Source of the DNA: Takakia lepidozioides
Lineage: Eukaryota > Plantae > Bryophyta
Assembly (NCBI GenBank): GCA_030704615.1
Contig: CM060733.1
Span: forward strand, 56,482,001-56,546,000
Reading direction: 5' to 3'
DNA: 64,000 nt
Part shown: positions 561 through 38,090 of the stretch, piece after piece
Layout: each line of letters starts with the position of its first letter
How positions within the stretch are numbered: the stretch's first letter is position 1
The notes under the pieces: generated by a model
Database searches by the model: none
Seen by the model: the letters and a program-made list of their open reading frames with translations, nothing else
Told to the model about the DNA's origin: nothing
Position numbers and translations under genes: made by a program

Positions 561-1987
561 CAAATTCAGGGCCGAGTCTGATGAGAGGGCAAAACAGGCT
601 GAAATAGGTCGAAGAAGAAGGTGCCCTCACCACATTGTCGTCGACCTTGTGTCATGACCCATGGAGGATTTGACAGACCATGAACCCAAACGGACCTCTT
701 GTGTGTGCTGCTTGTGTCTGTAGTCAGGTAACGTCGGATTGTCCATGAGAACCACCACGGTGCAGCTGAGCGAGCAGAGATTGAAACGCGACCTGCTAAG
801 ACCAACTTGCACGAGGACTTGGTGTGCGCAGCAGCGATAGGGCTTAGTGGGGCTTAGTAAGGCTTAGTGCATGAGGGGAAAAAAAAGACAACGCGAGGAG
901 TTTGAACCCGCAACCCCGCGAAAAGCAGGAAGAGCCCTTACCAATACGCTACATGCACCCATTTGAAATTTTTCCGCAAAAGTATGTATATACTAGGGCT
1001 TCGCTTTGCTCCGCACTACTAGCGACGAATTCTGAGAACTATGTTCAATTTTTCACAAAAAAAGGGTGGGTCATCCCCACTGTGTTACATGCAGAGATCC
1101 CATGTTTTGTTTTTTCCTGGAAGAAAAATGGTGGATCTGCATTTCAACATTCAATTTTCACAAGCCGCATCAATCAATAACGACATATCCAAATACCCTT
1201 ACATTCACTGTATGAACTTTCAAGCATCCACCATGGGATTGGATCTTGGTGGGTTAAGGCTAGCTTTTGACAATATTCATGCAAGTTCGTCAAGGGCTCC
1301 ATCCAAAGCCACACCACGAGAAACAAACGAACATGTCCAAATTTAAGATGCTGAACAAACTTGTGCACAGGGCTGCCCCTCTCATCAAGCTCATTAAAAT
1401 TCGTATTCACTTCCATCTTCAAGCTTTGGAGAAGCTCCACCACCCCTTCAGTCAAGTGCAATTGTGAGCTGACTTCCTACCTATGCCGGGTAGACCCCAC
1501 TATCAGGAAATGGTGGATGGTCTGAGTAGCTACACAGATCAATGAATGAAGCAAGACACTAGCATCTTTCCAAGAAAACATACATCATACATCTCAACAG
1601 CCTCCCTGCCATACTCATGCGGAGCATATGCTGCAATCATGGTCCTCCATGAAACCACATCATGTTGTGTCATATTGTCACCTGCGAGATGCGGCGTAGA
1701 TGTTGGATAGCAGCACATAACCTGCATGGTGGTTGGGATCGCACTTGAGAAGAGATTTTGCTGCATGTTCTGCTACCTCCACATCCCCATGAATTCTGGC
1801 AACAGCAAGCAAGGTCCCTCAAACCAGAGCATCTGGTTCAATTGGCATTTTGTTGATGAACTCGTCTGCCTCATCTCATCGGCCTACACGGCCAAGAAGG
1901 TCTATGATGCAGCAAAAATGCTCCACTGTAGGAGTGAGGCCGTGATCTCTACTCATGGAACCAAACAAGTGGTGGTCTTCATCCACC

Positions 1988-2516
1988 AGGCCTACATGCC
2001 TACAAGCAGAGAGAAGAGAAACGAAGGTGATACCATCTCGCTTCAAGCCTTCCTGCTGCATCTGTTCAAATAGTTGGAAGGCCTCTGTACTACACCCATG
2101 CTGAGCATATCCTGCAATTATGGCATTCCATGCTGCTGAACCATATTTTCAAACACTTGACGTGCATCGTGAACACTCCCACATTTGGCATACATGTTAA
2201 CAAGGGCATTGTCCAAGTTAAGATATGACACAACCCCAGCTTTGTTAATATCAGCATGGACCCGCGTGCCCTTTTCCAGGGCCCCTAGACTGGCACATGC
2301 ATTGACAACAGAAACGAACGTGACCCTGTTCGGTGTCATCGCATCCAGTTCCATTTGCTTGTATCTTGAAAGCCTCTTCAGCATAGCCATGCTCAGCATA
2401 TCGTGTAATCATGGCATTCCATGAGACCACATCTCGTTCAGGCATTTTGTCGAAAACCTGACGTGCATCTTTTCCGCTCCCACATTTGGCGTCAAGAAGG
2501 CTGTTCTCCACTTTAA
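1988..2516. repeat. ~530-bp block duplicated at 5371-5900
   Basis: Near-identical copies that share the same lesions (LLDAKCG lacking MY; frameshift at EEAFKI-QANG). Confidence 0.9.
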
Positions 2517-3547
2517 TATCCTGCAATCATTGCACTCCATGAGGGCTTCACCACTTCCCCCATCATTTGTTCATAGGTCTCCAAAGCCTCCATCCCGTGC
2601 CCCTGCTGTGCATACCCTGCAAGCATAGCGTTCCACGACACCACATTTCTTTCAACCAGTGTTGAAAACTCCTTTCGCATCCTCGATCCACCCACATTTG
2701 GCATATGTCCATCAGGGCAGTGTTCAGGATGAATCTGGTGCAATTCCAGCATTGACGATGTCACCACGGACCTCTTTCCCATTTTCCAGGGCTCCCAGGT
2801 TTGCACACACATTGCAACCTTGGCTTTGATGATGTCACCATGCACCCTTTGCCCTTTTCCAGGGCTGCCAGGCTTGCACAAGCATTGCAAACGCACACAA
2901 ACATGATGTGGTCGCACTTCACCCCTTACCCATCATTTGCTCATAGGTCTCCAAGGCCTCCATCCCGCGCCCCTGCTATGCATATCCTGCAAGCATGGCA
3001 TTCCATGACACCAAATCTCATTCAGCCATACTGTTGAACACTTCATCCGCAGCTTTAATGCACCCACATTTGGCATACATGTCCACGAGGGTATTGTTCA
3101 GAATCACATCTGGTACAATTCCAGCTTTGGCGATGCAACCATGCACCTCTTTGCCCTTTTCCAGGGCTGCCAGGCTTGCACACGAACTGCAAACGCACAC
3201 AAACGTGATGTGGCTTCACCCCTTCCCCCATCATTTGCTCATAGGTCTCCAAAGTCTCCATCCCACGCCCCTGCTGTGCATACCCCTGCAAGCATCGCGT
3301 TCCACGACACCACATCTCGTTCAGCCATGGTGTTGAAATTAACTCCCTTCGTATCCTTAATGCACCCACATTTGGCATACATGTCCACCAGGGCAGTGTT
3401 CAGGATGACATCAGGTACAATTCCAGCTTTGGCGATGTCACCATGGACCTCTTTCCCCTTTTCCAGAGCTCCCAGGCTTGCACGCGCATTGCAAACACAA
3501 ACAAATGTGATGTGGTTGGGCTTCGCCCCTTCGCACAACATTTGCTC

Positions 3548-4220
3548 CTAGGTCTCCAAAGCCTCCATCCCGCACCCTTGCTGTGCATATCCTGCAATCA
3601 TTGCACTCCACGACACCACATCTCGTTCAGCCATACTGTCGAAAACTCCCTTCATACTTGTCCACAAGGGTATTGTTCTGAATGACATTTTGTACAATTG
3701 CAGGTCTGACAATGCACCCACATTTGGCATACCTGTCCACTAGGGCAGTGTTCAGAATGACATCTGGTACAATTCCAGCTTGGACGATGTCACCACGGAC
3801 CTCTTTCCCCTTTTCCAGAGCTCCCAGGCTTGCACACGCATTGCAAACACAAACAAATGTGATGTGGTTGGGCTTCACCCCTTCGCGCAACATTTGCTCC
3901 TAGATCTCTAAAGCCTCCATCCCGCACCCTTGCTGTGCATATCCTGCAATCATCGCACTCCACGACACAACATCTCGTTCAGCCATACTGTCGAACACTC
4001 CCTTCATACATGTCCACAAGGGTATTGTTCTGAATGACATTTTGTACAATTGCAGGTCTGACAATGCACCCACATTTGGCATACCTGTCCGCCAGGGCAG
4101 TGTTCAGAATGACATCTGATACAATTCCAGCTTGGACGATGTCACCACAGACCTCTTTCCCCTTTTCCAGAGCTTCCAGGCTTGCACACGCATTGCAAAC
4201 ACAAACAAATGTGATGTGGT
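3548..4220. repeat. 352-bp tandem duplication of a PPR unit
   Basis: ORFs 3548-3730 and 3900-4082 are near-identical and offset by 352 bp; both carry the same insertion (attgcaggtctgac). Confidence 0.9.
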
Positions 4221-4224
4221 CGGG

Positions 4225-5037
4225 TGACGCGGAGTTTATCTCTTCGCACCAGAAGATGGACATGGCGAGCATATTTTGTAAGATAGATTGTTTCCTCCAT
4301 TGCAGTATCACCCCCTCCCACCACTGCGAGTTCCTGCCCTTTGTAAATAGGGGATGCTCCATCACAGATAGCACACGCACTGATGCCCCTACTCCAAAAT
4401 TCATGCTCCCTTGGCAAACCTAGCCTCTTAGTTGTTGCGCCCGTAGCAATTACAATACTGTGGCACTTCACCTGAAGCCAATTGCTTCTGAGCATAAGCT
4501 CAGGTCTAACAACATTCGACCAGTTGATTATCATACTAATCTGTTGTAAGCATTGCAACGGAGCAAGGAGGGAGCATGACATCACACACTATGATTGTCT
4601 GTTAGGAAAGGATCACAGCATTTGAGGGAAGACACAGTTATCTGAGGGGCAAAAAAGACAGAGCAAGAGGTCTGGATATCTGCTTTCTTTGCAAGTACAT
4701 GTGAGTACATGTCAAACAAGCGAGGAGAACACGAAACCAAAGAAAGAGGTTGCAAAGGGCGTTACTGTACCATGTCTGTAGGAACCAAAAGCAGCCTATA
4801 GTCACCTATACTCATAATGACTTAGATGAATCAACAAGCTAATTTATATAATTTGAAGCACATTGATGTCTAGACACAGAGTTTTGTCTGGTTCCATGCA
4901 ACCACGTATACAAGCTCAGATGCATCCGTACCTCACGTTCACTAGTTCTGACTGTGAAGGGTCGATTCTTAACATCAACAAACTCAACATCTTATGTAAA
5001 TAGCTCCGCCCCCCATCGCTCTGCTTGCCTTTTCATC
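4225..5037 (-). pseudogene. NTRC: Captured two-exon fragment of NADPH-dependent thioredoxin reductase C
   Basis: Exon 5037-4932 reads [34 protein letters not shown] (premature TAA at 4992-4994). A GT-AG intron follows. Exon 4471-4225 reads [41 protein letters not shown], the NTRC-type CAIC site. The fragment is fused directly to PPR sequence. Confidence 0.85.
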
Positions 5038-5370
5038 CTGAAGCCATGCACAGCAAACCAGAATGTTAGCAAATTGGACCTTAGGTGAGGTGCTAAGCAG
5101 AAATGCATGAAGGAAACAACAACAGTAGCTGCTAGATGGTGTTGAAACTTGATTGTCACCAACTTCCCTGCCCCAGTTATCATCTATATATGCCTACGTA
5201 CAGGTCCATTCAGCCCTTCTAGAAAACACAACCAAAGAGAGTTCTCTTGTCCTTTTGGAGGCCCGTGACTCTCTTCTTAGGCCCACTCTCCCCTAGTACA
5301 CTCCAGCACACAGAATGTGGCAACTACAAACCCCGCAAGCACAATACCCTGGCCCCCTCTCTGGGCACTC

Positions 5371-6380
5371 TGGCCTACATGCCTACAAGCAGAGAGAAGA
5401 GAAACGAAGGTGATACCATCTCGCTTCAAGCCTTCCTGCTGCATCTGTTCAAATAGTTGGAAGGCCTCTGTACTACACCCATGCTGAGCATATCCTGCAA
5501 TTATGGCATTCCATGCTTGCTGAACCATATTTTCAAACACTTGACGTGCATCGTGAACACTCCCACATTTGGCATACATGTTAACAAGGGCATTGTCCAA
5601 GTTAATATATGACACAACCCCAACTTTGTTAATATCAGCATGGACCCGCGTGCCCTTTTCCAGGGCCCCTAGACTGGCACATGCATTGACAACAGAAACG
5701 AACGTGACCCAGTTCGGTGTCATCGCGTCCAGTTCCATTTGCTTGTATCTTGAAAGCCTCTTCAGCATAGCCATGCTCAGCATATCGTGTAATCATGGCA
5801 TTCCATGAGACCACATCTCGTTCAGGCATTTTGTCGAAAACCTGACGTGCATCTTTTCCGCTCCCACATTTGGCATCAAGAAGGCTGTTTTCCACTTTAA
5901 TACACGAAGAAATTCCAGCTTTCATTATGTCAACTGGACCTCTTCGGCCTTTCCCAAGTCTCCTACACTGGCACATGCATTGAGAATGCAAATGAATGTT
6001 ATGTTGTTGGGCATAACCCCTTCCTGTTGCATTTGCTCATACATTTTGAAAGCCTCTGTACCAGATCCATGTTGAGCATATCCTGCAATCATTGCACTCC
6101 ATGAGGGCTTCATTTGCTCACACGTCTCCAAAGCCTCCATCCCGCGCCCCTGCTGTGCATACCCTGCCCCTTCATGTTGCATTTGCTCGTAGGTCTCAAA
6201 AACATCCCTGCTGCACCCATGCAGAGCACATCCTGCAATCACTGAACTCCAAGGGACAATATTTCATTTTGCCATATTGTTGGAACTTGACATGCATAGT
6301 TCATGCTCCCACATTCGGCATACATGTCAGCAAGGGCAGACTCCAGTAAGCGCTAATCCAGTTTTAACAAGGTCAGCGTG
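5371..6380 (-). pseudogene. PLS-PPR fragments (5' cargo of element A)
   Basis: PPR motifs in ORFs 5277-5783, 5635-5991 and 5925-6242, with internal deletions. Confidence 0.88.
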
Positions 6381-6777
6381 GATCTCTAAGCAGGCAGAGA
6401 TTGAAACACGGCCTGGCAAGACCAAGCTGACTCTCGCAAGAACCTTGTAAACATCAGGACGAATACCAAATCATGGTACTAACAGGAGGCAGAGATTGAA
6501 ACATAGCTTGGCAATAACCTGCTGTGTGTGCTGCTTGTGTCTGTAGTTAGATAATGTGGGATCGATCTATGAATCTGGACCCACACTCGATCCCTGCTCC
6601 TTCAGCTATCCATGCCTCTGCTTGCAAGGTGAACGATGGCGGTAAACGCAGAGCGCCTGCAGTTCAAGAAGATCAAGATCCGGGCATTGCGGGCAATTCC
6701 AAAAACGTTGGCGCGGCGATTTCTATTGGTCTATTTCTCGCGGGCCGTCCGGGCAGATTCCAAAGAAATTAACGACG

Positions 6778-6875
6778 ACGATGACCTGGCTACGATGACG
6801 TGTCTACGATGACATGGCGACGATGACGTGACGACGATGACGTGTCTACGATGATGTGGCTACGATGACGTGGCA
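6778..6875. repeat. 7 x 14-bp tandem repeat ACGATGACGTGGCT near the 5' end of element A
   Basis: Units start at 6778, 6792, 6806, 6820, 6834, 6848 and 6862; the consensus contains TGACGTGG. Confidence 0.92.
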
Positions 6876-7221
6876 CTATGGCACCCTATTCCTGCTCTAC
6901 GCTAAACTAGCTTCCGACCTTGGGTCGTCGCTAGAACTAGGGCTACACGTTGCTCCACACTACTAGCGACGAATTCTGAGAACTATGTTCAATTTTCACA
7001 AGGGCGGGGTCATCCGCATGGTGTTACATACACACATCCCAGGTTTCATTGTTTCACACAAGAAGAATGACGGAGTGTTGCTGAAGCTATCCGCCTTTCA
7101 TTGTTTGATGCAGATAAAATTATTCTTCCATGAAGGCTTTGTTTGAACTATACGACATATTTGCTACCATAGGTACCCAATGATGTGTTCAATGTGACTT
7201 TTATGACAAAATAGTTATGTT

Positions 7222-7448
7222 TTATTTTAAGGGAAACACCTGCGTGCGACAGCTCACAAATCACACCCCTTGATAGTGAGGAGAAAATAACCTCAAACCT
7301 CGCCATGAAGGCTTTTTGATGGGACACTGCCCAAGGGTAGTGGGAGAAGATTAGGAGAAGAGCATACCACACCCGTCAAGTAGCAGGATTTGATCCCAGA
7401 ATCATCTGGGTGGCAGCAGTGCAGTAACCAACTGTGCTACTGACTCTT
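7222..7448 (-). mobile_element. tRNA-derived SINE (family 1)
   Basis: A-box-like TAGCACAGTTGG and B-box-like GGATCAAATCC; body is homologous to the copy at 50661-50895. Confidence 0.75.
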
Positions 7449-8049
7449 GGTAATAGTTATTGTTTTGAAAATATCAAGGTGCCACTGGCACCCCAACAAT
7501 TTTTCAAATCTCAATAAAGTCAATAATAATAATAATACCCTGACCCAGCGGGTAAATCTTTTCACAAAATTCAGGTTACCCTTTAGATACCACCATACAA
7601 AGAGATTAGGCTTACATTGGAAGAAATCTGAGAACCACAGAAAGTTATGTGTGCTTATCATTTTTGTATATTTGGATATGTTTGTAGGCATTGCCACAGC
7701 CTTTTGCAGTTTGCTGCTTGTTCTAATCTAAATTACAAAACAGCCTGTTAGAGCAGTGTTGCAATAATACTTTTGGAGTTGCACATGGAGAGAGTCAGTT
7801 GGTTCATGTTCGTTGCTCATTACCATATCACAAGCCTGTGCTTGATCACCTAAGTAGGTCAGGGTTTGTTACAGCCCAGCTAGAGTAACCTCTCCACTGG
7901 TGGCTGCACTGTGGCTCTATACAATTACCATCTACTATGAGAATGCAACCACTAACCTTGAGAGTTGCCAATGCATCAAACTATACGCTGGCAATCAGAT
8001 TATGTAAGTAGCATTTAACGTACCCAAAAGTGCCCATCACACGCGTTGA

Positions 8050-10460
8050 TACATAGCCATGAACTTTGCAGGCACTAAGCATGGCCCTCCACACCCCAAC
8101 ATCTGGTTGCAGCATGGACATCTTTACCTGTCTCCTGGGCACCCCAGGCTTGCACACAGATTGAGAACACAATTGAACGTGACCTTGTCTGGCATCACCC
8201 TTTCCCCCATTATTTGCTCATAGATCTGAAGAGCCTCCCTGCCACTACCATGTTGAGCATATCCTGCCATCATGGTGTTCCATGCCACCACATCTTGTTG
8301 AGTCATTTTGTCAAAGGATAAGCATAGGATAAGCATAGGATAAGCAGATCAAGCTCGCAAATTTCTGAAGGGGAAGTTGTCATTCAAGTTTGTTGAAGCC
8401 AAGATTGTCCGTCGATCTAAGCTGCAAATACTGTTGAGCCTCTCCGTCGCTTAGTTCGTTCATGGCACACGCTGAGCCTGATTTGATCCTGGCCCTGTAC
8501 ATGCAGTCACCACACATCCAAAGGTTCTTGATGATGCCGATAGGCGTCCCAGAGGGTGTGCTTATCATCCAAAAAGCAATGGCCAGCTTCTCACTGAGGT
8601 GGCAGAGAGAAAATTCCTTTTGCTGCTCTTCCACATCGTGCAATACAAAACGAGTGTCTGGTCCGGCATGTACCCGGTTTTCTCCATCTGCTCAGAGACT
8701 CTCTTCAGCTCAGCATGGATTTCCCCCATTTGTGGATGCAGTTTGTCTTCTGCAACAAAGGTATGCACCCGGTTGTCCACCTCAATACAGCTATGCCCTG
8801 GCTCCTTTCCTACATCTCTCTTGTGCACCATTTTCCTGACCTTTGCTGTGTCAGCCCACCTGCCAGCTGCATCATAGATGTTTGATAGGAGCACATAAGT
8901 TGCAAAGTGTTGTGGATTGCACTTGAGAATGCATGTCGTTGCATGCTCTGCTTGCTCCACATTGCCATGAATTCTACATGCACCAAGCCAGGCACCCCAC
9001 ACCGTAGCATCTGGTTTAATTGGCATCTTACTAACTCTGCCTCATCCAATCGCCCTGCACGGCCAAGAAGGTTCACCATGCAGCCAAAGTGCTCCAGGGT
9101 AGGAGTGAGACTATGGTCTTGACTAATGGAAACAAAGTAGTGAAAGCCTTCATCCACTAGGTCCACATGGCTACATGCAGACAAAACACATATAAAGGTG
9201 ATACCATTTTTCTTCAAGTCCTCCAGTCTCATGTGTTCAAATAGTTGCCCGTACCCCATACTGGGCATATCCTGCAATCATCGCATTCCATGAGACCAAA
9301 TCTCGTTCGCACTTGGCATACATGTTCACAAGCGCAGTCTCGAGAATGATGGCTGATGCAATTCCAGCTTCTATAATGTCAGCATACACCTCTTTTCCCT
9401 TTCCCAGGGCTGCCAGGCTGGCACAAGCATTGAGCACACAGATGAATGTGACCTTGTCGGGCATCAGCCCTTCCCCTCGCATTTTCTCATACATCTCGAA
9501 AGCCTCCTTACTGAAACCATGCTGAGCATATCCTGCAATCATTGTGTTCCATGAGACCAAATCTCATTCAGCCATGTTGCCAAACACTTGGCACGCATCC
9601 TTCAGGCTCCCGCATTTAGCATACATGTTCAGTAAGGTATTCTCCAAATTAATATATGACCCAGTTCCAGTTTGATAATGTCAGCATGTACCCTTTTGCC
9701 CTTTTCCAGGGCACATGCATTGAGAATGCAAATGAAGGTGACCAAATCAGGGGTCACCCCTGCCTGTAGCATTTGCTCATAGATCTCAAAAGCTTCCTTA
9801 CCAAACCCATGCTGAGCATATCCTGCAATCATCGCACTCCAGAACAAATCCCATCTTCAAAGTGGTGGAAGTGGTTAGTGTCCCATACAAAAATTGCTCG
9901 ACCAACAATCTTTGAGATGTGTGGCAGTCACCACACACTCGAAGATTCTTGATAAGACGGAGAGGCGTCCTAGGGGTCGTGCTGATCAGCCCAAAACCAT
10001 TGGCCAGCTTCTCACTGTGGTGGCAAAGAGAAAACTCCTTTTCGCTCATATGTCTCCAAAGCCTCCCTACCAACTCCATGCTGGGCATATCCTGAAATCA
10101 TTGCACTCCAGGAGAGCACATCTCGTTCAGCCACCAGGCTGGCACATGCATTGAGAACGCACACAACCGTTACCTGGTTGGGCATAACCCCTTTCTGTTT
10201 TGCTCATAGATCTCCAAAGCCATTTTACCACATCCGAGCTGAGCATATCCTCCGATCATCGCACTCCATGAGACCACATTTTGTCGAGCCATATTGTCAA
10301 ACACTAGATGCACATCTGTCATGTTCCCAAATTTGGCATAATGTTGGCAAGGGCAGTTTCCAGGACGATATTTGGCTCAATTCTGGCTTTGATAATATCA
10401 GCATGGATCTTTTTGCCCTTTTCCAGGTCTGCTAGGCTGGCTCATGCATCGAGAACGGAA
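8050..10460 (-). pseudogene. PLS-PPR-E-DYW fragments with two partial DYW deaminase domains
   Basis: 9026-8500 reads KEPGHSCIEVDNRVHTF..CHLSEKLAIAF..KNLWMCGDC. 10040-9845 reads [42 protein letters not shown]. Both are interleaved with PPR motifs and frameshifted. Confidence 0.9.
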
Positions 10461-10613
10461 AATCCAAGCACCATGTGCTTGGAAGTTGGCAATTAGGTGT
10501 GGCTTCAAATGTGTGGAAAACATGTCCAATAATGCACAAGCTACTAATATTGTGATAAACTGTCCACTCATCTGAGCAGCTGTAAAAGACAAGCCAATAT
10601 GAGCACTCCTTAC

Positions 10614-10707
10614 CCATTGGATCATAGTGTGGACCGCATCCTTAAAGAAATCATCTGAGGGCCGCTTTCCTGTGAGAATCTCCAGGAGCACCACACCAAA
10701 GCTGTAC
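10614..10707 (-). pseudogene. Receptor-like kinase exon fragment (subdomains IX-X)
   Basis: YSFGVVLLEILTGKRPSDDFFKD..IQW followed by a GTAAGG donor. Confidence 0.7.
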
Positions 10708-10884
10708 AAGATGAAAAAACTTACATTATGAAACCACCACTGTGAAGCATCTGAGAAAAACTCCAGCCAGAGCTGTTTGTTGCTCATTGCTTGATCTGCG
10801 TGCAGACACTACAAGAGCATGCGAGCTCTGTCATTTCCCTTACTCCGAGGAAAATCCTGGTAGGCATTACCCCCTAAACACATT

Positions 10885-11590
10885 TTATTCAGCCGTATTC
10901 TCAAACACATCAGGCACATACCCAGCCTCCTTCATCTGCCCAGACAATCTGCTCAGCGCAGCATGGATTTCCTCAATCTGTGGATGCATTTTGCCATCCA
11001 CAATGAATGTATGCACTTCGGTGTTTACCTCAATGTAGCTGCGACCTTGCTCCTTCTGCACACCTCTGGCCTTCATCATTTTCCAAACTGATGTGGGCAT
11101 CGTCCCACCTGCCAGCTGCAGCATGGATGTCTGATAGCAACACATAAGTTGCGGCATCTTGTTCATCCCACTTGAGGATAGATGTTGCCGCACGTTCAGC
11201 CATCTCCACATTGCCATGGATTCTGCAGGCACCAAGCAAGGCCTTCCACACCACAACATCTGGATTGATTGGCATTTTATTAATCAGGTCCACTGCCTCA
11301 TCCAGTTGTCCCGCACGTCCAAGAAGGTCCACCATGCAGCCAAAGTGCTTTACTGTCGGAGTAACACCATGATCGAAGTAGTGTCTTCCTTCATTCAGTA
11401 GGCCAGTGTGGCTGCATGCAGAAAGAACACATATAAAGGTGATACTGTCCGGCTTCAAACCGTTCTTTTACATTCCTTCAAATAGTTGCAGGACCTCCCT
11501 ATGACAACCATGCTGGGCATATCCTGCGATCATCAAATACCCACAACACCACATTTCGTTCAGTCACATTGTCAAATACTCCCTTTGCCC
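10885..11590 (-). pseudogene. PPR L2-S2-E-E+ fragment
   Basis: KPDSITFICVLSACSHTGL..HFGCMVDLLGRAGQLDEA..WKALLGACRIHG..EAGYVPD; contains a frameshift. Confidence 0.9.
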
Positions 11591-11899
11591 CTCTAATCAA
11601 GGTCATTGCGAATCATATTCACTTTCATCTTCAAGCTCTGGAGAAGATCCACCACCCACACCAGAAATATGACAGCACTCTAATTTCCTTCCACTATCAC
11701 CAGAGACAGTCAAAATCCCCCCTTCACTAACTACCTGTAGACCCCGCTACTGTTTCATCTGGATCTATGGTACAGAAATGCGCCCCTCAACAGTACATCA
11801 TGGCCATTATTCTCAGGAAATGGTGGATGAATTGAGTAGCTACACAGATCAAAGAATGAAGCAAGGCATCCGCACCATTCCAACAAACAAGACAACATT

Positions 11900-11995
11900 T
11901 CACCAGTAATCCCTACAAGAACAAACCCCATCTTCAAAGTGGTGAAAGCCGTTAGTGTCCCATACAACAATTGCTCGGCCAACAATCTTTGAGAC
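11900..11995 (-). pseudogene. DYW C-terminus with stop codon
   Basis: [30 protein letters not shown] (TGA at 11900-11902). The downstream UTR-like sequence also occurs at ~1490-1570 in element A. Confidence 0.88.
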
Positions 11996-12915
11996 CAACT
12001 GTACTGAGAGGCTTTATACACAGGATTGAAAACTTTCATGCTCTCATGAGTCTTCAAAATGGTAGATACATTCGGCGCTTATGGCCCCTCTCTAGTCCCT
12101 GATGGTGATTTGTAGGCCTACCCTCCACAAAAGGATCGCAGAAAATCATCTTTCCAAAGAAAGGCAGGGCATGACTGCTGAGCCATGGGAGGATGCTGTT
12201 TTGAGTGTCTCATCAAACTTCCAATGTAGGAATAAGATAATGTAATCGTCCAGTGGGTGGGAGAACCCATGGCCAGCAGATGCATGCATTGAGTGGGAAT
12301 GATCTTGGAATAAACAAGAGTATGCAATTCTCGTAATACCCATTGTAGGCAGGTCATGTTTGTCCCATATGGCCGCTGCAAGAAGTCTTGATCAATGTGC
12401 ACGCCCCACTGCACAAGCAATCCACCACATCATAAATTGAGCTTGGACCCGCAAGAGAGCAGGCTCTTGGTTGTCGAAGGACTTGCATGTTAAATGTAAG
12501 TTGAAAGACCTGCAGACCCAGATGTCTCTCACAGGGACTGCTTGTGAAAACCATGTTGCAAAACTGAAGTGTTAGCTTGTAATAATTGATGTGCACACTT
12601 AATTTGGTCCACAACATGCCCTTAGATATGAGCATCCTGGGTGGGACAGTCCACCTATGTCTACCTATTAGCCCCCCAATAGACAAAAGTGGAAAGTGTC
12701 AGTCCTCACCTCATGAAATGTTTTCTGCCTCAGTGATGCCAAACAGTTTGTCAACCAACCCACCATTTACAGCAGAAACTGGACATGGATCATGAATTTC
12801 ATTATGCTTTTAAAACCAGCATTCTGTTGAGGTGGTGACCCCCTGTCCCAAGGCATCAATGTTTTGCTTCCTGCTATGTTGGAGCTCTGATTTTTGTAGT
12901 CCACAGCTGGCGCTC

Positions 12916-14110
12916 CTATCTTATGTTAATACTTCGCAATGACAGATCACCAGTTCCTCCTATGGAGACCTTCTTGACAGGTTGTGCCATCCCAAATACC
13001 TTCCAAAAGCGAAGTGTCTCATCCGCAGCAGCGGAGACTACCATTGTTCCATCAGGGCTCTACACAAATTACAGCACTAAAATCATGAGAAAGTCACAAA
13101 CATAAAAGTAATTCACTCAATTTCAACAAACGATGGCAATGACGATGTTGGACCGTCAGTGGCATTATGGATCCACATGTGCATTTTCGAGCCAGAGCTG
13201 CAACACGGCTCCTCTGAACCCTAGAGTAGTACAAACGTAAGTGTAATATGAAATGAAATTCTGCAAATTGTCATCTTTGGAAACACTAGAATGTCAACAG
13301 AAAGAAGTCTTAAAACCTGGGCAAGATGGAGAACACGGGCAATGTGACCAGTGAGTTCAGCAATTTTGGCCATAGATGGATACTTCCGCAAGCACAGTTG
13401 ATTCTGGCTGAACCCATGGCTGCTCAGTATCTCCTTTTGATGCCGGTTCCATTGCAGAGCACACACCTGAGTGCACAACCCAATGTTTGACCACCAGACC
13501 TAGATCAATAATAGTGAAACCTTGTGTGATGCAGAACATCTTCACATATGCCATCCTAACTTGCCCATGCAGTTCTGAAAAGTTCAGATATCACCAACTG
13601 AATTTAGAGGAACATATATAATACAGTTTTTCAAACATCTCATTTTCAGTCATAAGAAACTACATACGGTGCACTAAAACTTTCTCATTACACGAGAAAT
13701 GGGACAGTGGAATTAATAATATCACATCGTACAATGTAAGCTAGATTTTACTATTCTTCAAGGAAGTATCGATCTCATCGGCAAACCATCAACCTGGGAA
13801 TGAGTGTCGACACTGTTGATACAGGCACCTGTCTGCGTGTTCCATACAACGATCAGCAGTACCCCCTCCAGACGCGAGTAAGTTGGCCTGGAAGGGGCAC
13901 CAGGCAAGTGCTTTCACAGCTGCTTGGTGGTCGTCCAGCCTGTGTAGATAGACTACTGACTCAGGTGATGATGATGTGACAGCTGCATCCCAAATGTGGA
14001 GCAAGTTGTCATTGCCTCCACTTGCTAGCTGTTGGCCTGACGGTGACCACTTGAGGCCACACACCTCCTGATTGTGCCCTATCAGACGGGAGGTGATATG
14101 ATCTCTCACC
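12916..14110 (-). pseudogene. CDC20: Captured 3' three-exon fragment of CDC20 (APC/C activator, WD40)
   Basis: Exons ~14110-13794 ([30 protein letters not shown]), 13466-13317 ([20 protein letters not shown]) and 13059-12916 ([21 protein letters not shown], the IR tail). Introns are retained, the N-terminal half is absent and there is a frameshift after TADRC. Confidence 0.85.
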
Positions 14111-14731
14111 AGTACTGCCAATTCAAAACACACTCTTTAGCAAGTCATATTTTGAAGGAAGACATGTCTGCAGTATCCATTTAAGCCTCTTTCTCCTTCT
14201 GGTACTTTCAGTAATCTCCACTGCCTTCAAAGTTCCCCGTCTGAATGCTCAGTTAGTTTTTTATCCTTGAATGTGTATGTGACAACCCATTGTTGAGTTT
14301 CAGAAACATCTCACTCCATCAGAAAAACATTGTTATGCTGATCAGCATACTTTGTATCACTTCTTGTTGATTCCTTACCCCAAACTTTCTATTCAATGCT
14401 TGGAAAAGGGCCCAAAAGCAAACAACCTTACCATCATGATTGATGATGTGGCTGTCACGACCAAAACACGTTCACAAGCCTAAGCAAGCAAAATGATGTG
14501 ATCTGCGGAGCCTTTGCACGAAAATCGAAGCTGATCGAATGAGGGAAAGGCCACGATTTGGATTGAGCAGCGAGACTGTTGAGAGCTTGCAAGGTGCAGG
14601 ATGGCGGAAAACGTAGAGATCCTGCGGTTCAAGAACTTCAAGAACCGGGCAGTCCGGGCAACTCCAAAACAACTTGGCGCTTTGGGGTTTTTCGCGCGCT
14701 GTCCGGGCAGATTCTAAAGAAATTGACGACT

Positions 14732-14773
14732 ACGATGACCTGGCTACAATGACGTGTCTACGATGACGTGGCA
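14732..14773. repeat. 3 x 14-bp repeat near the 5' end of element B
   Basis: Same unit as 6778-6875. Confidence 0.88.
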
Positions 14774-14896
14774 CTACGGCACCCTATTCCTGCTCTACGC
14801 TAAACTAGTTTCCAACCTTCAATCGTCGCTAGAATTGTACATACGTAACGGGCAACTTTTTAAGTTTTTTAACCTTTTTACAAACCCTATAAGCAA

Positions 14897-15108
14897 TTTT
14901 TTTTTTTTTTTAAATAAATTTTAAAGGAAACCTCAGGCCCTTGAGGAGGGGGAAAAATTAACCCCCTTTCATTTATGGGCCATGAGACCTACAGGAGGAT
15001 CGACGCCCAGACATACCGTCGTCACAAACAATCCCACACATGGGGTAATGCAGCGGGTTTGAACCCTAAACCACCAGGGCGACACACTCTGCACTTACTA
15101 GCCGATGT
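14897..15108 (-). mobile_element. tRNA-derived SINE (family 2)
   Basis: Minus strand has B-box GGTTCAAACCC, a 3' end TCAAGGGCCTGAGGTTTCCTTT resembling the family 1 tail, then poly(A). Confidence 0.55.
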
Positions 15109-15159: not shown

Positions 15160-16764
15160 TGGTTACAAGTGAGCACATAGATGTATTTCATGGAGATAAA
15201 CAAAACTGTTTATCCGGTGTCTTCACGGTGGATGTATCCCATGGAGCGTTACATGAAAGATCTTAAGAGATACGTTAAGAATTACGCAAAGCCAGAAGGG
15301 AGTACGGTTGTAGGGCATGTTCTTGATGAGGCTATGGGGTTCATGACTGAGTATATGCAATCATTTGATGCAACTCAACTGCGGACTTGGGATGCAAATG
15401 CGGAGGAAGGGGTTGAGGACGAGGTCTTCGAAGGTGTCGGCGAAAAGCGGGACATAACTGGAGCTGGGAGAGATGCAGCACAAATTTTATATGTGCTGAA
15501 CAATACCAATGTTATGACTCATTGGGTGCAGTGAGTACTTCTTTTCATTGCACCTTATTCATATCAAGTTCAATTTCAATTCTAATTGTCACCAATGTAA
15601 TCAAACCACCCACAAAGTCACAAATGTTAGTGGTTCATCTTGATTATAACCAATGCTGTAGTAACGGATTGTCTAAGTGAGTGACTTGTTGGAAAAACAT
15701 GTTCATTTACAAGTCATTCTGCTCACTCCTCCAATGGTTTGAAACAGTGGTTTTCAAAGTATCATTCATGCTAGGTATTTTTTGCTAAGTAATGCAATAC
15801 TTCATTGCTAACATGTGTCATTCTTGTTGCCATTTTGTGACAAAAAGTATGCAATAGAGAAGACACAGTTCACAGCAGACAGAGAGGCATGTGGTGATGA
15901 GTGGCGTGCCAATCGACGTCTACCTTATCAGATCAGCCAATACATAGGTCATTAGATGGTGCCACGGCTCTAAATAAAAAAGACCTGGCTATGTTGGCTA
16001 CCATTCAAGCGGCATTTGTGCAACCAACCGCTATTCCAGTTGAGCAAAGTGATTCAGAGGGTGACGAATATGTTTCAGATTCAAAATAAAGTTTATTATT
16101 GGAACCATTTGTTCAATAGCATCATCCCACAATGGTCTGGCCACTTGTCTGTTTTTCAAAGTCTATCACAACTGCACAAACCACTTAAAGTTTTTCATGT
16201 ATCATCCAAAAAGTGGTACCAATCACTGTTGTGTAGGCAATAACTCATGAGCAACCACTAGAATAGTGGTTCCAATTACTACAGTATCTTTCACCACCCA
16301 CTTTCCACCACTGTCAAAGTGGTACAAATCAATGAGGTGTCTTTAACCACTCAAAATCAACGTGCACTGTCCCCGTCGAATATTATATTTATTAATTAAA
16401 ATATATTTTCAAATCATAAATCACAAATAAAATTTGAATTATTACACGTGGAGTAGCAAGTGGTTTCAACCACTTCCCATCACTGAGTTGTCTATAACCA
16501 CTCACAATGTACCACTGCACTCGTCCACGTGGAATATTATATTTATTAATTAAAATTTATTACCAAATAAATAATAATAAATAAAAACAAATTATTACAC
16601 GTGGACTACTGAGTGGTTGAAACCACTTCCAACCACTGTCTGTGATGCCACCGTGGCATTTCATTGGGATTAACCACTGGCAAGTGGTTACTAGTGGTTT
16701 ATAGAGTGGAAAAAGACAGTAGTGATTAAAGGGCCAGTGGTTATTTCACGTTTTTCTTCTAGTG
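15160..16764 (+). mobile_element. CACTA (En/Spm) transposon 3' half, degenerate
   Basis: TNP2-like C-terminal peptide RWMYPMERYMKDLKRYVKNYAKPEGS; dense AACCACT/AGTGGTT subterminal repeats; a ~150-bp duplicated subterminal block; terminus TTTTTCTTCTAGTG (reverse complement CACTAGAAGAAAAA) at 16764. Confidence 0.85.
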
Positions 16765-18399: not shown

Positions 18400-18808
18400 T
18401 CTAGACATGGCTTTTGTATTTCACTGTGCTAGCAATGATGAACCACAGTCCTTGAGAGAAGCATTGGGGAGTTGATGCTTCACAGCAGAAGGATTTAGAA
18501 TACAAATCCAATATGGACAATGGTACTTGGGTTTCTTGTTCCTCTGCCACTTGGAAGGAGAACAGTTGGAAGCAGAAGGGTCTTCAAGGTGAAATACAAG
18601 GCAGATGGAACTGTGGAGCGATACAAAGGCGCCTGACTCGTTGCCAAGGGCTATTCTCCATGGAAGGTGAAGCAAATCTTACGGTATCTCAAAGGTACTA
18701 TTGGTCATGGGTTATGCTTCAGTGGGAGTCGGCCCTTAGACAAGGATGGTTTGCACATGGTGGGATATTGTGATGCGGATATTTTGACCAAGAGTCTTAT
18801 TCGCGAAA
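18400..18808 (+). mobile_element. Ty1/Copia RT-RNaseH remnant with large internal deletions
   Basis: EPQSLREAL, FKVKYKADGTVERYK.RLVAKGY, KQILRYLKGT, GYCDAD/ILTKSL. Confidence 0.8.
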
Positions 18809-18950
18809 TGGGCTACATATTGCCAGGCCGACCAATTGCAAATGTTTGCTTCAAAACAGTATGTCGCACTATTTCCTTCTTGCAAGACTTCAAGTTGGTT
18901 CATAGTCTAGGTGCATGTTTTGAAGACGTTGGCATGTCATTTCTCTCCTT
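18808..18950 (+). pseudogene. OPT exon-5 plus intron copy (inverted part)
   Basis: [26 protein letters not shown]; reverse-complement match to ~41470-41665, including the start of the intron. Confidence 0.85.
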
Positions 18951-19294
18951 TGTCAAGAAAACATACACATACTTCTGAAGATGCATGGATGCAACAATAT
19001 GACTCAATTACAAATAAGCTCTCATCCCAACTATAGAGGTCTGCACAAAGATTAATTGCCTCTCCCCTGAGGTCAATATATATATCTCATAGATGTCTCC
19101 TACCAAGAGTCTATCCCCTCAAGACTTATCTAATAGCTATTCTAAGCCGCATCTATTCTAGGTATCTAGAATGTCTAACGGATGATGAATTGAACCCAAA
19201 AGTTCAATAATTCTAACATTCCCACTCAACGAAACAGCCGTTAGTAAGATCGGGAGTCAACAACCCCCCTCATCTTTTTGAAGCGTACATGTTT
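18951..19294 (-). mobile_element. Copia 3' end: pol C-terminus, PPT and ~268-bp LTR
   Basis: Minus strand reads KHVRFKKMRGL, then PPT GAGTGGGAA, then an LTR TGTTAGAA...TTCTTGACA (19218-18951) containing a TATA-like run. Confidence 0.7.
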
Positions 19295-19304
19295 GCGCAC
19301 AAGC

Positions 19305-19470
19305 TGATGATATTCAACCCAGGAGACTCCACATTCAATTCAACACAACAGTCAACTGGCAAGAAGGATCTGTGGTTGGTCATAAGGCCTTATAGGAGAC
19401 ATCAAGGTCCCACTACATTGACACATGTACATAGGTTTGTAGCAAAGGCCAATCAATGAGTTGACTGGGT
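19305..19470 (-). pseudogene. OPT exon-5 5' end and intron-4 copy
   Basis: Direct match to 41677-41840 (gatattcaacccaggag..caactggcaagaaggatctgtggttgg). Confidence 0.85.
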
Positions 19471-20247
19471 TTCTGCAGTTTTTATTGAAAGTGCTCAAAG
19501 GGAAAATCTGATTGCCTTGAGCTTGCATACTTGCATAATAAGTTAGATAGCTGATGACCCATACCCTACGGTCTCAAAAGTTCATTCTGTCTTTGACAGC
19601 TGACATACACCGTTGTAACAATGGGAGGGCAACATTTTCACATTTCGTGAAATAACCATCCATGAAACTCTGGACAGTTCATTCTTTAGATACCTCCCAT
19701 ATGTCCCCCACACGAGATCCAGTCACTTTCTACGTAGACGACGGAGGTTTTCTAATTGCCAACTTAGGCAGAGAGAGGGACCTCGGCATCAGAAATGCTA
19801 GAGAGAGACAAGAACTAACTTATAGAAAGAAAGGAAGAAACTCTAGAACTACAGAACCCACCCACAGTGTCAAACCATTGAAAGTGGGGGAGTACATGAC
19901 CCATCTCTAAATGCTTCCCATACCCCAAATCATCCACTGGATGGAGAGAGAGATAACACGAGGCTCCATTCACACCAGGACCTATGGCTCACACTATTTC
20001 CCTAATCAACATGTGGGCGATCTAATTACCCGGTTTAGCTAATGTCAGTAATCTCCTTAACGGTGATTACAAAGTAACTAATTAGCAGGTGGATTCCGTT
20101 GTGCCCACAACTATGAGGAAGCTAGCACGTAGGCTGAGCTGCATTGCATTTCTGGAGTGGACCAAGGATAGCACCGATGAGATTTTAGTAAGGAAAGGAG
20201 GGGAGGGGAGAGAAAGTCTGTGGATTGCCTTCATTTCAGTGAAGGAA

Positions 20248-23200: not shown

Positions 23201-26200
23201 TGCAGGTTTCAGGAACTCCTGGTATGCTCGTGTGGACAGTTTATTTCAACGCAACGGACTCTCTACTGCTTTCCTATTACCAATGAATCCAGATGAGGTG
23301 GACACCACATCCAGACACGACTGCAATTAGGAGAGAGCTTATGGAATTGCATGTCAAGAGAACTTGGAAGCTACCCAATCTCACGACAAAGCTCCACTTC
23401 TATCGAGAGACATTCTTGGTGCTCCACGATCATAGAATCTTGAGACCAAATTACCTTTCAGCATCTTTATCTCCTTCCCTCCTGAGGGCATTGGGGCGGT
23501 TCAGGGTGGGTTCCCACAACCTACGGATAGAGACTGGCAGAATGGGAAAACCTGCAACGGGAGGACCGCCTATGTCCAGCTTGCATAGGGCGCAGCCAGG
23601 AAATTGAAACTGAAGAACACTTCTTCTTCTACTGCCCTCTATACTACGAGATCCGTGGGAGATTCCACTGTTTATTCAGTGGAACCCAAACTCTCACTGA
23701 TGTCTTCCACTATGAGGATCAAAAATGCTTGGCAGCCTACCTGCACAAGGCCTTCACCCTTAGACAATCTTTAGAACATTAATTGTTATTCTTGGTTTCA
23801 TGTTCCTCTCTCATGTTTTCTTCCATTTTGTCCCATAAGCTCTATGAGCTTTCCATGGACGTTATAAAGCACCATTTCATTTCATTTCATTTCTCTGTGT
23901 TGAAGCTTTGGGCTGAATCCTGGGTTGGAGATTTACATCAGTGCTAGGAGTTTGGAAGGCCAGATTGTGCACCAAGGTGAGTTTCAGTGCGTGGGGAAAG
24001 CATGCAGTGCTGGTTGTGGGCTACACCTCGCTTTTGACTTCCCTTCTTCGCTTTCCAATGGGTAGTGGGGTCTGTCTCCAAAGTGCTGGCACATCTATGC
24101 CCTTGACCATATATGCTGTCTTTTTCTCTCTGCATTGTTTTGTCTCTACCTAGTACATGTCTCTCTGTATTGTTCTGTATCTATGTGCCAATGTGTTGAT
24201 CGACAGAACTGATATTGGTACCTCTGACCACTTCCTGGTTTGGACTGAGATCAAAAGGTGTTTTCCCAACACCAAGAGATCTGTGAAACGTTCGATTCGG
24301 AAGTGGCGCATAGAAAAATTCCATAATGAGGAGGTCAAGGCTGAGTACGCCCAGGCCTTGCAAGAGGCTCTCCCTCATTTTGTCCAATCGCTCCAAGAAC
24401 TTCAGTCTCGCTCTGACAATGCAAGAAATGAAGTTGAAAGAGCAGTGGACTCTTGGGAGAGTTTCGTTTCCTCCGTGGCTGACAAGATCATTGGGAGGAA
24501 ACTAATTGTCTGCGGAAGAGCTGTTAATTGGTGGACCAATGAGATTAAACTCAAGATAGCTGAGAGACGAGCCCTCTATAAAGAGTGCTGCAATTTGAAA
24601 ACCAACAGAGAATTGTGGGCGAGGTACTACCAGCTCCGTAAAGATATTAATCAGCTTGTTAGGTCTCAGAAGAAATTATACTGGGACAAGTTATACAGTG
24701 AAATAAACTCAAACCACCATGGTGGTAATGACAAGAAATTCTGGTTGGCCCTTCAACATTTGTACAAGCCGAAAAACGGTCAGCAAGTACAAGCGCTGAA
24801 GACTACTAAAGGTGCAGTGGTGACTTCATCGGTTGACATTGTCAAAACCTTTGAAACTCACTACAGTATCCTTGGCAGAACTTCTAGGTCTAACAGTGAG
24901 AGGTCTTCTGCTGAATGGAGGGACACAGTTGGAAAAACTGTTCCTATGATTCAAAACAGCCCTGATGAACTGGAGTATATTTCAATGGCTTATAACTCTC
25001 CCATTAGTTCTTCTGAGATTGTGGAAGCAATTGAACATTTAAATGGATATAAAGCTGGTGGACCTGATGGTATTGTCAACGAGCTTATCAAGCACGGTGG
25101 CGATCCCATGATAGAGGCCCTAGTTCTCCTCTTTAACCTTATCTGGAAGACTGAAATGATCCCCTTTCGCTGGCGACAGGGGTCATTGTCAATCTATACA
25201 AGAAGGGTGACAGAGAAGAACCGGGGAACTACCGCGGCATCACGTTCCTCAATGCTGTTGGCAAGACATTCTGCAGAGCTATAAGTACTCGTCTCGAGGT
25301 TGATCTGGAGTCTAGAGGTTGTTTCCACGAAGGCCAAGCTGGCTTTCGGCGAAACAGGGGCTGTGTGGATCATATCTTCACTCTAAGCCAGATTATCCAG
25401 GGAAGGAAAAAAGAAGGGAAACCCACTTATGTTTTTTTCCTGGATGTCAAAAAGGCTTATGACACAGTGTGGAGAGATGGCCCATGGTTCCGCCTCTGGT
25501 CTTGTGGGATCAAGGGAAAGATGTGGAGAGTTGTCCACAACTTGTATGCTCACACCAAAAGCTGTGTCACTGTTAATGGACAGAAGTCCAACTTCTTCGA
25601 CATAGACCAAGGTGTAGCTCAAGGATGTACTCTCTCCCCTCTGCTCTTCAATATTTTCATCAATCAACTCCTCGAGGATGTGGAAAGTGAGGGATTTGGG
25701 TTAAGGGTGGGTGATACCACTATACCAGCCCTTATGTTTGCGGATGACTTCACAGGCATAGGGGAGACTCCAACCAATCTCCAGGAGTTGATTGATTGCG
25801 CGAAGAGATACTTTGATCTTTGGGGGCTAGAGGCTAATGTCAGCAAATGTGCAGTGGTAGCATTCAACGACAGAGGAGGGAGGAAGTGATCTTAAGTGGC
25901 AGTGGGGTAGCCAAGAGATCCAGTCCTCCCTTCCTACACTTACCTGGGCGTTGAGTTTTCCTCCAATTGTAATTGGGATGCACATATCCGGAAAGTTGTT
26001 CAAACTGGCAAGGGCAAAGCTCTGGGGCTCACTAAATTTTTCCACTGCAGAGGGGTCAACTCTGAGGTTAAGAAAACCATGCTTTGTCGCATTATTAGAC
26101 CTGCCTTGGAGTACGGATCTGCAATATGGGTTGATAACTCCAACCAGGCTAAGTCTCTAGAATCCATTCAAGTGGGGGTGCTTAAGGAGTGTATGTCAGC

Positions 26201-29200
26201 ATGCTCCAAAACAGCCAATGTGGCTGTTCGGGGTGAGTTTGGCATTCCGTCCTTAAGCTCCCGACGAGATGAATTCAAGGTCAGATGGTGGGGTCAGCTG
26301 CAACATATGCCCAACACCAGATATCCAAGTTAATCGACTCTATATCTTGGAAACAGGACCGCCCTGTCAAACAGGCTAAGTCCTGGCAGAAGAGAGTAGA
26401 AGAGATTCTCAAGGACCTGGACCTGGATCCGCAAGTCTTGACCCTGCTGGATAAATCTGACTTAGAGGCTGTAGTGTCCAAAGCCATGTCTGTTGCCTTG
26501 AGATTGTTTGATGAAAATGAAGTTAGGCAGAAAACTTCCCTGAACTTGTTTCCAGTCAGTGCCATGAGGGAGGACATCTTGGATGACCTCAAGGGTCTAC
26601 CCAGTCTCGGCACTAGACTGAAATTTAAACTCAGGGCAGGAAGCCTACCTTTGAACAGCAAACAGAAGCAGAGAGGAAAGGGAGAGTGCAATTGCCCGTT
26701 GTGTGGGCAATCTGAAGACAGTATTCATTTTCTGATACACTGTCCGGGGTTCTCTCACGAAAGAGACGCTCTCTTCAAATCTATCAAGGGAATTGTGCCT
26801 GTACCCCTGTTTACCAACTTTGAAAGTCTCGAGGCTGAGCCAAAAGCCCAGGCCCTCCTGAGGCCTAGTTTTTGGGCAAATCACACACAGCCGATTGATG
26901 CTTGTGTGAAGGGATTTCTAGAGGATATCTGGAAAACCCGGATTAATTCTATATATGAAGGTAAGTCTTACTACCAACGTCAGCCCCTGACAGAGGTAGG
27001 TTCTGTCCCTTTTGTTCCCGCTCAAACTGGGCGCGGGGTCAATGGCCACAAGGCTACGGCAAACAACGTCTTATGAGTACAATCTCTGTATTGTTCTGCA
27101 CATCTTGGAAATTGCTGTGTGCATCATGGGTTGGCATTCTTTAATGCTGTGTCACAGTCACAATGAGACAAGGGTCCATGCTGCAGGGTGGGGCAGGGAC
27201 ATGGAGTGATGGAAAGCTGACCACACGCATTGGGAAAAACAGTGGCAGTGTGCAAACTGTAAGTATCTTTTGTTCTGCATGGTCCCTGGCTGATTGGAGT
27301 CTCGTGTGAAACCTGGAAACCTTGTGTTGGATTCTGCTACTGCTACTGGCCTCACTGGGAATTGAATCTGGATCACCTGCCCTAGGATTTAGAGGGGCAG
27401 GCTCACGTAACAGAAGAGTAGAAAATAAATAATAAATCCTGGTGTTTGGAATCAAAGCTCAAAAGCCAAGAACATATGTGTATAATGTGTACATCTATAT
27501 GACATATGCTCCACCTCAAACAAGATAAAATTGATGCTTGCAGCCAGAAAGTCCCCATTTCCTTATTTTAGTTTCATTTGCACTTTCCTTTGCCACTCTG
27601 CAGTTGCTTCAATGAAATTACAGACATGTACACATCACATTAGGTATGAAGTATTTCATTTCTGGGTTTATTGAATCATGACCCAAGTGGTTCCTTGCAG
27701 GTCCTAGCGACACTGGTACGCTTTGGTGCTCCGGCACATATTTTAATGGATGGAAAGCCCCATATAGGGACTGATCGACTTATCCGCATCCTACAGGCTT
27801 TTCGGGAGCATTTGCTTTCTCTGGGTGTAGTGTTTTGCCCCTCTCTATCTTTCTAGATGCCCACCAAGGAGGAATGGCAACTTGCTCCAGTCAATCTTGG
27901 TGTGTCCTAGAGGTTCAGATATCAGTTTCTTTCATGGAACTCAGGTGGTCAGGATTTTGAACTGATTATGTGATTATCTTTGTTTGATGCCTGCATGGTA
28001 AAACATGTAGTGAGAATATCTCTTTGCTTTTGTGGAAGTGGTAGAGGACATGTGATGGATTGTTCTGCGTTGGAAAAGAGGGGTATAGGAGATAAAGATA
28101 TTCCGGCACAATATCCTGGTCCTCAGAAAGCAGTACCATGCTGAAGTGGGAAACACGTTTCATTGATTGGATTTCGGAAGTTGGCACAAAAATTTGACAT
28201 CGTCAAGCAATTTCTGCAGGTCAATATTATGTTTGGGACGCGGATGGATGATCTCATTGTACGCAATGGTCGTGTGGTTGGAGTGCGATTATGTCCGGTG
28301 ATGGGGAAACCTGAACATATCTGCCCAGGTGTACTGGAAGCAGATGCTGTAGTGCTGGGGGTGGGGCACTCAGCACGCGATGTCTATGAGAGCCTCCTCT
28401 CACATGATGTTCTTATGACTGCCAAGGACTTTGCTGTATGTCCTCTTTCTCTTACAACTATGATCTGGTTGATTCCAGTACGTGGAGCTTGTAAAGTGTG
28501 CATGGTGTATATAGATTTGAATTGAGAGTATTATTGGGTCGGAGCCGTGCCCTCTGTCTGATTTTTTTTTTGAGGTCGAAGTCATTGAAGAGGCATATCA
28601 TGAGTTTCTTTTCTCTCCCCCCCTCCCCCCTGTGGACTTTATAACGTTTATTTCTTAATTCTGTCTCACAGGTTTCCTTTTGCCCTAATATAGTTCATTC
28701 TTTCTCTGTTGTCCTAAGGTGGTTCATTGGCATTCTAGGTGGGTTTCCGAATTGAGCATCCACAAGAGCTTGTCAATGAGATCCAGGTGCACACTGTGTC
28801 GCTTTCTATTTGCGCTAGCTCTGTGAGTGATTGGATATGATTGTTCTTTCCTACTTCAAAGACAGCTTATCTCGCCATACTAATGGAATCAGAACCTTTG
28901 AGACGGAATTTTATTCTGTGGTGTCTAGGGTGTGAGTGTGCACTGCACAACCTAGAGACACCCACCGTTGCTTGCTGGGTTATCTCCACCTCACTTTGGG
29001 AATATGCTCAGACAGGCCTTGTTGGCAGATGGCCCAGTGGTTAGGGAAGTTGAACTCCACATCTGGTTCTTACCCACTATGGTCAACCCATCTATAATGG
29101 AGGGTTATTGAGGCAGCTGGTTAATGTGAGGGATATCCAACCAGGTCAATTGTCTAACTCCGAAAACATTTGAGTCTTCAGGAGAAGTATTGGGCCACTA

Positions 29201-37734: not shown

Positions 37735-38090
37735 ATTTGGTACAACTGCAGCTCTGACCATGTGGACCTCTTTGCCCTTTTCCAGAGCTGCCAGGCTTGC
37801 ACACGCATTGCTATGCATAGAAACGTGATGTGGTTGGGCTTCACCCCTTGCCAAGGTCTCCAAAGCCCCCATACCACGTCCCTGCTGTGGATACCCTGCA
37901 AGCATCGTCTTCAATGACACCACATCTCGTTCAGCCATAGTGTTGAAAACTCCCTTTGCATCCTTAATGCACCCACGTTTGGCATACATGTCCACCAGGG
38001 TAGTGTTCACAATGACATCTGGTACAATTCCAGCTTTGACGATGTCACCTTGCACCTCTTTGCCCTTTTTCAGGGCTGCCAGGCTTGCAA
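37735..38090 (-). pseudogene. Isolated PLS-PPR fragment
   Basis: GDIVKAGIVPDVIVNTTLVDMYAKRGCIKDAKGVFNTMAERDVVS; very similar to 3040-3480. Confidence 0.85.

Follow-up and report, generated by a model that had tools for sequence, protein, structure and literature searches.

Two adjoining elements with rolling-circle-type ends and fragments of PPR, E and DYW genes in Takakia lepidozioides

Paired ends of two adjoining elements

The DNA analysed here is a 64,000-nt window of the Takakia lepidozioides assembly GCA_030704615.1 (contig CM060733.1, positions 56,482,001 to 56,546,000), and all coordinates below are positions in this window. Two elements filled largely with gene fragments, among them pieces of PPR, E and DYW coding sequence, lie side by side in it, both read on the minus strand. 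The first (993–6936, 5,944 bp) is non-autonomous and HLE2-like in structure; the second (6937–14834, 7,898 bp) abuts the 5′ end of the first head-to-tail, and window self-comparison placed its first base directly after the last base of its neighbour. The original prediction, made from the sequence alone, had proposed two elements of 5.9 and 7.9 kb with homologous termini at these positions, and self-comparison and alignments bore this out. The left ends (992–1130 and 6936–7069) aligned at 80.6% identity over 139 bp. The right ends aligned in two blocks, 6620–6818 with 14585–14772 (80.5% identity) and 6830–6936 with 14728–14834 (88.8% identity), separated by a 14-nt minisatellite whose length differs between the elements, with 6.9 copies in the 5′ region of the first (6776–6874) and 3.1 copies in the second (14730–14772). 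The conserved 5′ region spans 6620–6936 in the first element, where it is CpG-rich (observed/expected ratio 1.47), and 14585–14834 in the second.

On the minus strand, each element starts with TT-CTAGCGACGA and finishes with CCCTAG at its 3′ end. The reverse complement of CTAGCGACGA is located 26 nt before the 3′ end in both elements, giving in both copies an asymmetric inverted repeat of 10 perfect bp (12 with one mismatch) whose arms lie 2 and 26 nt from the ends. A perfect asymmetric repeat of 10 bp is expected by chance at about 4e-5 per copy. The terminal arms are at 6925–6934 and 14823–14832, and the subterminal arms at 1019–1028 and 6963–6972, within the 3′ terminal regions 993–1130 and 6937–7069. 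A 21-nt terminal motif was present only at the two element ends and in 0 of 100 shuffles. The first element also has a 5′ hairpin (6907–6934; −8.4 kcal/mol, z −2.7), one arm of which is nested in the terminal repeat; this hairpin has decayed in the second.

Target-site duplications were absent from the element junctions, and all three junctions were compatible with TC...CTAG inserted at T|T or TTC...CTAG inserted at A|T. The prediction of rolling-circle-type ends without a target duplication thus held, the ends being closer to HLE2 than to a canonical Helitron. Symmetric terminal inverted repeats with target duplication, the traits of gene-carrying MULE and CACTA elements, were not found. Neither a RepHel remnant nor a transposase was detected in the two elements, and a Pfam search of 128 leftover frames on both strands gave nothing credible, additional cargo included. 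Terminal patterns read from the second element and largely common to the ends of the first had zero matches in two metagenome scans, and the termini had no match in another contig (L001). When the flanks 983–992 and 14835–14845 were rejoined, a 7-bp inverted repeat was seen around the insertion point.

PPR and other gene fragments in the elements

The element interiors were divided into pieces by jump-alignment with a PPR profile that summarised a retrieved set of 150 PPR proteins. This gave 32 PPR/E/DYW pieces, with PPR, E, E+ and DYW pieces confirmed by Pfam, covering 61% of the first element, 38% of the second and about 48% overall; the prediction that such pieces make up most of the interiors is therefore correct for the first element and not for the second. 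As had also been predicted, the recognised cargo lies entirely on the strand of the elements (p about 0.01 if seven donors are taken as independent): tblastn of the 150 proteins inside the elements returned 7,502 matches on the minus strand and none on the plus strand. Co-oriented cargo is also a feature of maize Helitrons, one not found in PMC3288121.

In the first element, from 5′ to 3′, a segment homologous (83–97%) to pieces of the left flank 186–805 (6387–6572) is followed by a mosaic of PLS-type PPR sequence with P2-L2 motifs (5373–6386). A thioredoxin reductase fragment intervenes before the second PPR block (2516–4224, block B), which is composed of PLS triplets and includes a 352-nt tandem repeat. 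Next come a recent internal duplicate of 5372–5902 (1989–2518; 531 bp, 98.7%), an L2-S2-E1-E2 part of a PPR gene with two stops, cut in the E2 motif (1681–1990), and a short PPR piece (1585–1680). The last feature before the 3′ terminal region is a stretch (1374–1588) with two non-coding blocks in common with 11586–11898 of the second element, 1503–1588 matching 11813–11898 (83%) and 1374–1445 matching 11586–11657 (86%). In the second element the shared blocks come after the stop codon of a DYW fragment, and they are probably the 3′ flank of a DYW gene.

The second element carries, again from its 5′ side, a CDC20 fragment, the 32 C-terminal codons of a DYW domain followed by the stop codon (11903–11998), a P2-L2-S2-E1-E2-E+ remnant that breaks off where the DYW domain begins (10906–11597), a possible kinase fragment and PLS pieces (10045–10459). 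These are followed by a DYW piece with the HSE and CxxC motifs, an internal deletion and a C-terminus replaced by PPR sequence (9844–10043), by the longest collinear PPR-E-E+-DYW remnant (8503–9841), in which deletions, frameshifts and a stop are present, HSE reads LSE and the DYW domain is cut after CxxC, and by a PPR piece with an E1-motif piece (8050–8315). An unrelated dispersed repeat (7220–7451), 81% identical to 50669–50895, is nested near the 3′ end.

It was found that the pieces derive from several genes. Four distinct E1 motifs, 65–83% alike, indicate a minimum of four PPR donor genes, and a generous count gives about ten. Between the two elements PPR pieces never exceed 83% identity, so the elements were loaded separately. 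The interiors are largely distinct, as had been predicted, apart from the two short shared blocks. A single rolling-circle concatemer was rejected because the ends are only 81–89% alike and no PPR piece exceeds 83% identity between the elements.

The cargo of both elements is pseudogenic. The PPR/E/DYW pieces are interrupted by 10 stops and 16 frameshifts, no open frame on the strand of the elements exceeds 171 codons, and none of the three DYW pieces in the elements is a complete domain, in agreement with the prediction that these copies are non-coding. A search for an intact PPR-DYW frame inside the termini, proposed with that prediction, found none in the two elements; no single open frame runs from a PLS array across E1-E2-E+ into a DYW domain that has HxE, CxxC and its C-terminus. 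The rearrangement of the cargo is real and is blind to reading frame. At 3359–4224 the 352-nt unit, which is not a multiple of three, is repeated 2.5 times at 95%, and the 531-bp block (98.7%) is duplicated around the insert formed by the thioredoxin reductase fragment and block B. Microhomology at out-of-register junctions was 0–3 nt, not above chance (p 0.085). The proportion of PPR–PPR jumps that stay in frame was borderline (9/16, p 0.05).

Three non-PPR genes also contributed fragments, as predicted. The first element holds two exons of a thioredoxin reductase, which we take to be of the NTRC type from its motif and from the top matches. One exon (4932–5037) was recognised by inspection of its translation and has one in-frame stop; the other (4229–4471; Pfam, PDB match E 4e-44) is cut and fused to PPR sequence, and a 460-bp GT-AG intron (4472–4931) is retained between them. 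In the second element, the 3′ part of a CDC20 gene (12916–14470), confirmed by Pfam and by homologue search, has one frameshift and three GT-AG introns (14431–14115, 13793–13467 and 13316–13060). The NTRC and CDC20 exons were searched one by one, unjoined, and the match to the Pfam model passes without a gap from position 273 in one CDC20 exon to position 274 in its neighbour. The receptor-like kinase fragment (10608–10709) is a weak match of 34 aa (E 1e-4 to BRI1). In the homologue search the closest database protein was 65% identical for a PPR piece and 82% for CDC20, and none was from the same species. ARAGORN and Rfam gave no matches.

Because the NTRC fragment keeps one GT-AG intron and the CDC20 fragment three, capture was from genomic DNA and not from mRNA. 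RNA-mediated capture or retrocopying was rejected on the same four introns. PPR genes are often intronless, so PPR pieces alone are uninformative on this question. The internal, interleaved placement of the cargo would fit template switching during break repair better than end bypass during rolling-circle replication.

PPR debris is also found outside the termini, at 66–185 and 37727–38089, 88–94% alike to block B. The fragment at 37727–38089 (minus strand) stands alone, is 88–90% alike to block B pieces and has no family termini nearby. In the left flank (66–870), a PPR piece 94% alike to block B of the first element lies beside rearranged copies of 6387–6572 on the same strand; this flank may be what is left of a sibling element; alternatively, the two elements inserted into a related PPR gene and the flank is the 5′ part of that gene.

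PPR genes make up 2,016 of the 27,467 genes of T. lepidozioides. At an assumed share of 12%, four PPR donors among seven correspond to p 0.005, in a window chosen for its PPR load and with captures that may not be independent. At this minimum donor count the excess of PPR over a PPR-rich background is modest. Repeated pick-up and rearrangement of PPR sequence, as originally proposed, are thus apparent in at least four PPR donors and the internal rearrangements; a PPR-specific vehicle is not, given the captured non-PPR genes and the PPR debris outside the termini.

Origin of the elements and of their cargo

We consider it likely that the two elements are non-autonomous members of an HLE2-like family, mobilised in trans, which captured parts of several genes at the DNA level and scrambled them without regard to reading frame, their PPR load reflecting the abundance of PPR genes. 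The HLE2-like class is a putative one, assigned by structure: the paired ends, the asymmetric inverted repeat, the nested 5′ hairpin and the minisatellite match published HLE2 and DINE-1 anatomy. A RepHel transposase encoded at another locus would copy the elements in trans, and the two would be separate insertions, one landing at the end of the other without target duplication. Element lineages may have acquired genomic DNA of host genes, a source documented by the retained introns, in several steps; deletions and duplications followed regardless of reading frame. The dominance of PPR sequence would stem mainly from the very numerous PLS-PPR genes, possibly aided by homology with PPR sequence that the elements had taken up before.

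Several observations weigh against this interpretation. The window has no transposase that could be the presumed mobiliser, and the target site is ambiguous between A|T and T|T. Folding gave no Watson–Crick hairpin at the 3′ end; two GCGNAGC motifs, which in the first element follow the inverted repeat, could form mini-hairpins of a kind that the folding model is unable to score. The generous count of 10 PPR donors among 13 corresponds to p about 1e-7 at the same assumed 12%, with the same selection caveat; on this count PPR sequence is over-represented even against a PPR-rich background, and family-specific PPR enrichment is possible.

The elements share features with several known systems. 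HLE2 elements are characterized by short asymmetric inverted repeats, with one arm at the 5′ end and the other 20–40 nt from the 3′ end, and by a 5′ hairpin, and are known in mosses, including Sphagnum HelenSM92 (PMC11417382). The HLE2 group, to which the FoHeli elements (PMC5148889) also belong, resembles the Takakia elements in these traits, in the absence of a duplication, in tandem insertion and in being present in mosses; a stem-loop after the 3′ arm is a further HLE2 trait, and FoHeli3–5 also lack this hairpin (PMC5148889). The Takakia elements differ from HLE2 in their HLE1-like CTAG 3′ end, the lack of a clear 3′ stem-loop and their very heavy host-gene cargo; the standard HLE2 target is T|T, whereas they fit A|T or T|T, and their class is read from the ends, with no transposase seen. 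DINE-1/HINE elements carry internal tandem repeats and, within the 5′ arm, a short inverted repeat, and are similar also in their subterminal inverted repeats and non-coding nature (PMC4067079). Unlike them, the Takakia elements are 6–8 kb long and filled with gene fragments, and gene capture was reported to be infrequent in Helentrons and HINEs (PMC4067079). The gene-capturing HLE1 Helitrons of maize (PMC3288121) share multi-gene, stepwise cargo, internal loss and a mostly non-autonomous state, but lack the asymmetric inverted repeat, and the cargo of the Takakia elements is dominated by one gene family. Pack-MULE and Pack-CACTA elements are likewise non-autonomous and hold scrambled gene fragments taken from DNA, but have true terminal inverted repeats, target duplications and cut-and-paste movement. 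Gene capture by Helitrons is already well known, and heavy capture by HLE2-type elements is little documented.

Three other explanations were weighed. The family could truly contribute to PLS-DYW expansion, copying whole or nearly whole PLS-DYW genes as DNA, with homology-guided template switching between thousands of PPR paralogues, occasional new functional repeat orders and an origin for some of the dispersed Takakia duplicates that show no marks of retroposition; some members would then hold functional or re-ordered whole genes, and the two elements here would be their decayed siblings. The probable 5′ and 3′ PPR-gene flanks at the two ends of the first element and the long collinear remnant of the second (8503–9841) suggest that large gene parts were captured, most PPR duplicates of Takakia are dispersed and bear few signs of retroposition (PMC13386178), and the in-frame jumps, at their borderline level, point the same way. 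We nevertheless regard this contribution as unlikely, as the cargo in these elements is all broken and a frame-breaking unit has been amplified. The suggestion in the original prediction that the family feeds the expansion of editing-factor genes is thus unsupported here, with frame-blind rearrangement and no intact DYW domain.

Classification as a canonical Helitron (HLE1), or as an HUH element of some other kind, for instance a Replitron, with the inverted repeat incidental in either case, appears very improbable. The ends can be read as HLE1-type 5′-TC and 3′-CTRR, here TC...CTAG, or taken to mark an insertion at A|T, and CTAG forms a 4-nt direct repeat at both ends that is part of the inverted repeat. 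Against this stand the perfect 10-bp asymmetric inverted repeat of both copies, an HLE2 trait, and the absence of the GC-rich hairpin 10–12 nt before the 3′ end that marks HLE1. Replitrons have short direct terminal repeats and a Y1 Rep, compared with only the 4-nt CTAG repeat and no transposase seen here, and the Replitron paper makes no mention of gene capture. Least plausible of all, to the point of being nearly negligible, is a decayed PPR gene cluster in which small independent insertions mimic element ends, the case named at the outset as one that would refute the elements. PPR debris does extend to the left of 993, with sequence in common with the first element; however, the ends are paired and correctly oriented twice, the repeat arms lie at opposite ends of each element, unrelated NTRC, CDC20 and kinase sequences are spliced in, and no collinear gene is left.

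The origin of the thousands of PPR editing factors in early-diverging land plants is an open question. A 2026 survey of PPR genes credited their expansion to retroposition, noted that the features of retroposition are limited in Takakia, and contains no mention of Helitrons (PMC13386178); our literature search found no paper tying Helitron capture to DYW genes. A gene-capturing rolling-circle family offers a testable DNA-level alternative to retroposition for PPR expansion, and counts of PPR genes may be too high where they include such element-borne debris. Should the family hold no intact cargo, it is only a family of heavily loaded transposons.

Other features of the window

Short minus-strand sequences with A-box- and B-box-like motifs lie on either side of the element pair, at 870–965 and about 14998–15108; they are possibly tRNA-derived short interspersed elements, with no match in ARAGORN or Rfam. 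A DUF4218 fragment (15181–15531, plus strand, E 1e-14) is located 350 bp from the second element. DUF4218 is typical of CACTA transposases.

Further to the right, 18637–18975 and 19305–19475 are 84–85% alike to an oligopeptide-transporter-like gene at 41560–41839, and by inspection the former is fused to an apparent Copia-type reverse transcriptase/RNase H fragment. Reverse transcriptase fragments resembling long interspersed elements, with 98% identical partial copies, were found at 24154–27087, 31562–31882 and 33677–34168, and by inspection they apparently separate the exons of an FAD oxidoreductase-like gene. Contig L001 has, at 1998–13821, an MSP/ankyrin gene together with two long PPR genes that are oppositely oriented.

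A plastid transketolase gene is present in the window at 58854–62669 (plus strand), its best database protein being 84% identical. In a tree without labelled liverwort or hornwort sequences, this transketolase grouped with those of Sphagnum and Physcomitrium (support 100/99), which places the host near the mosses.

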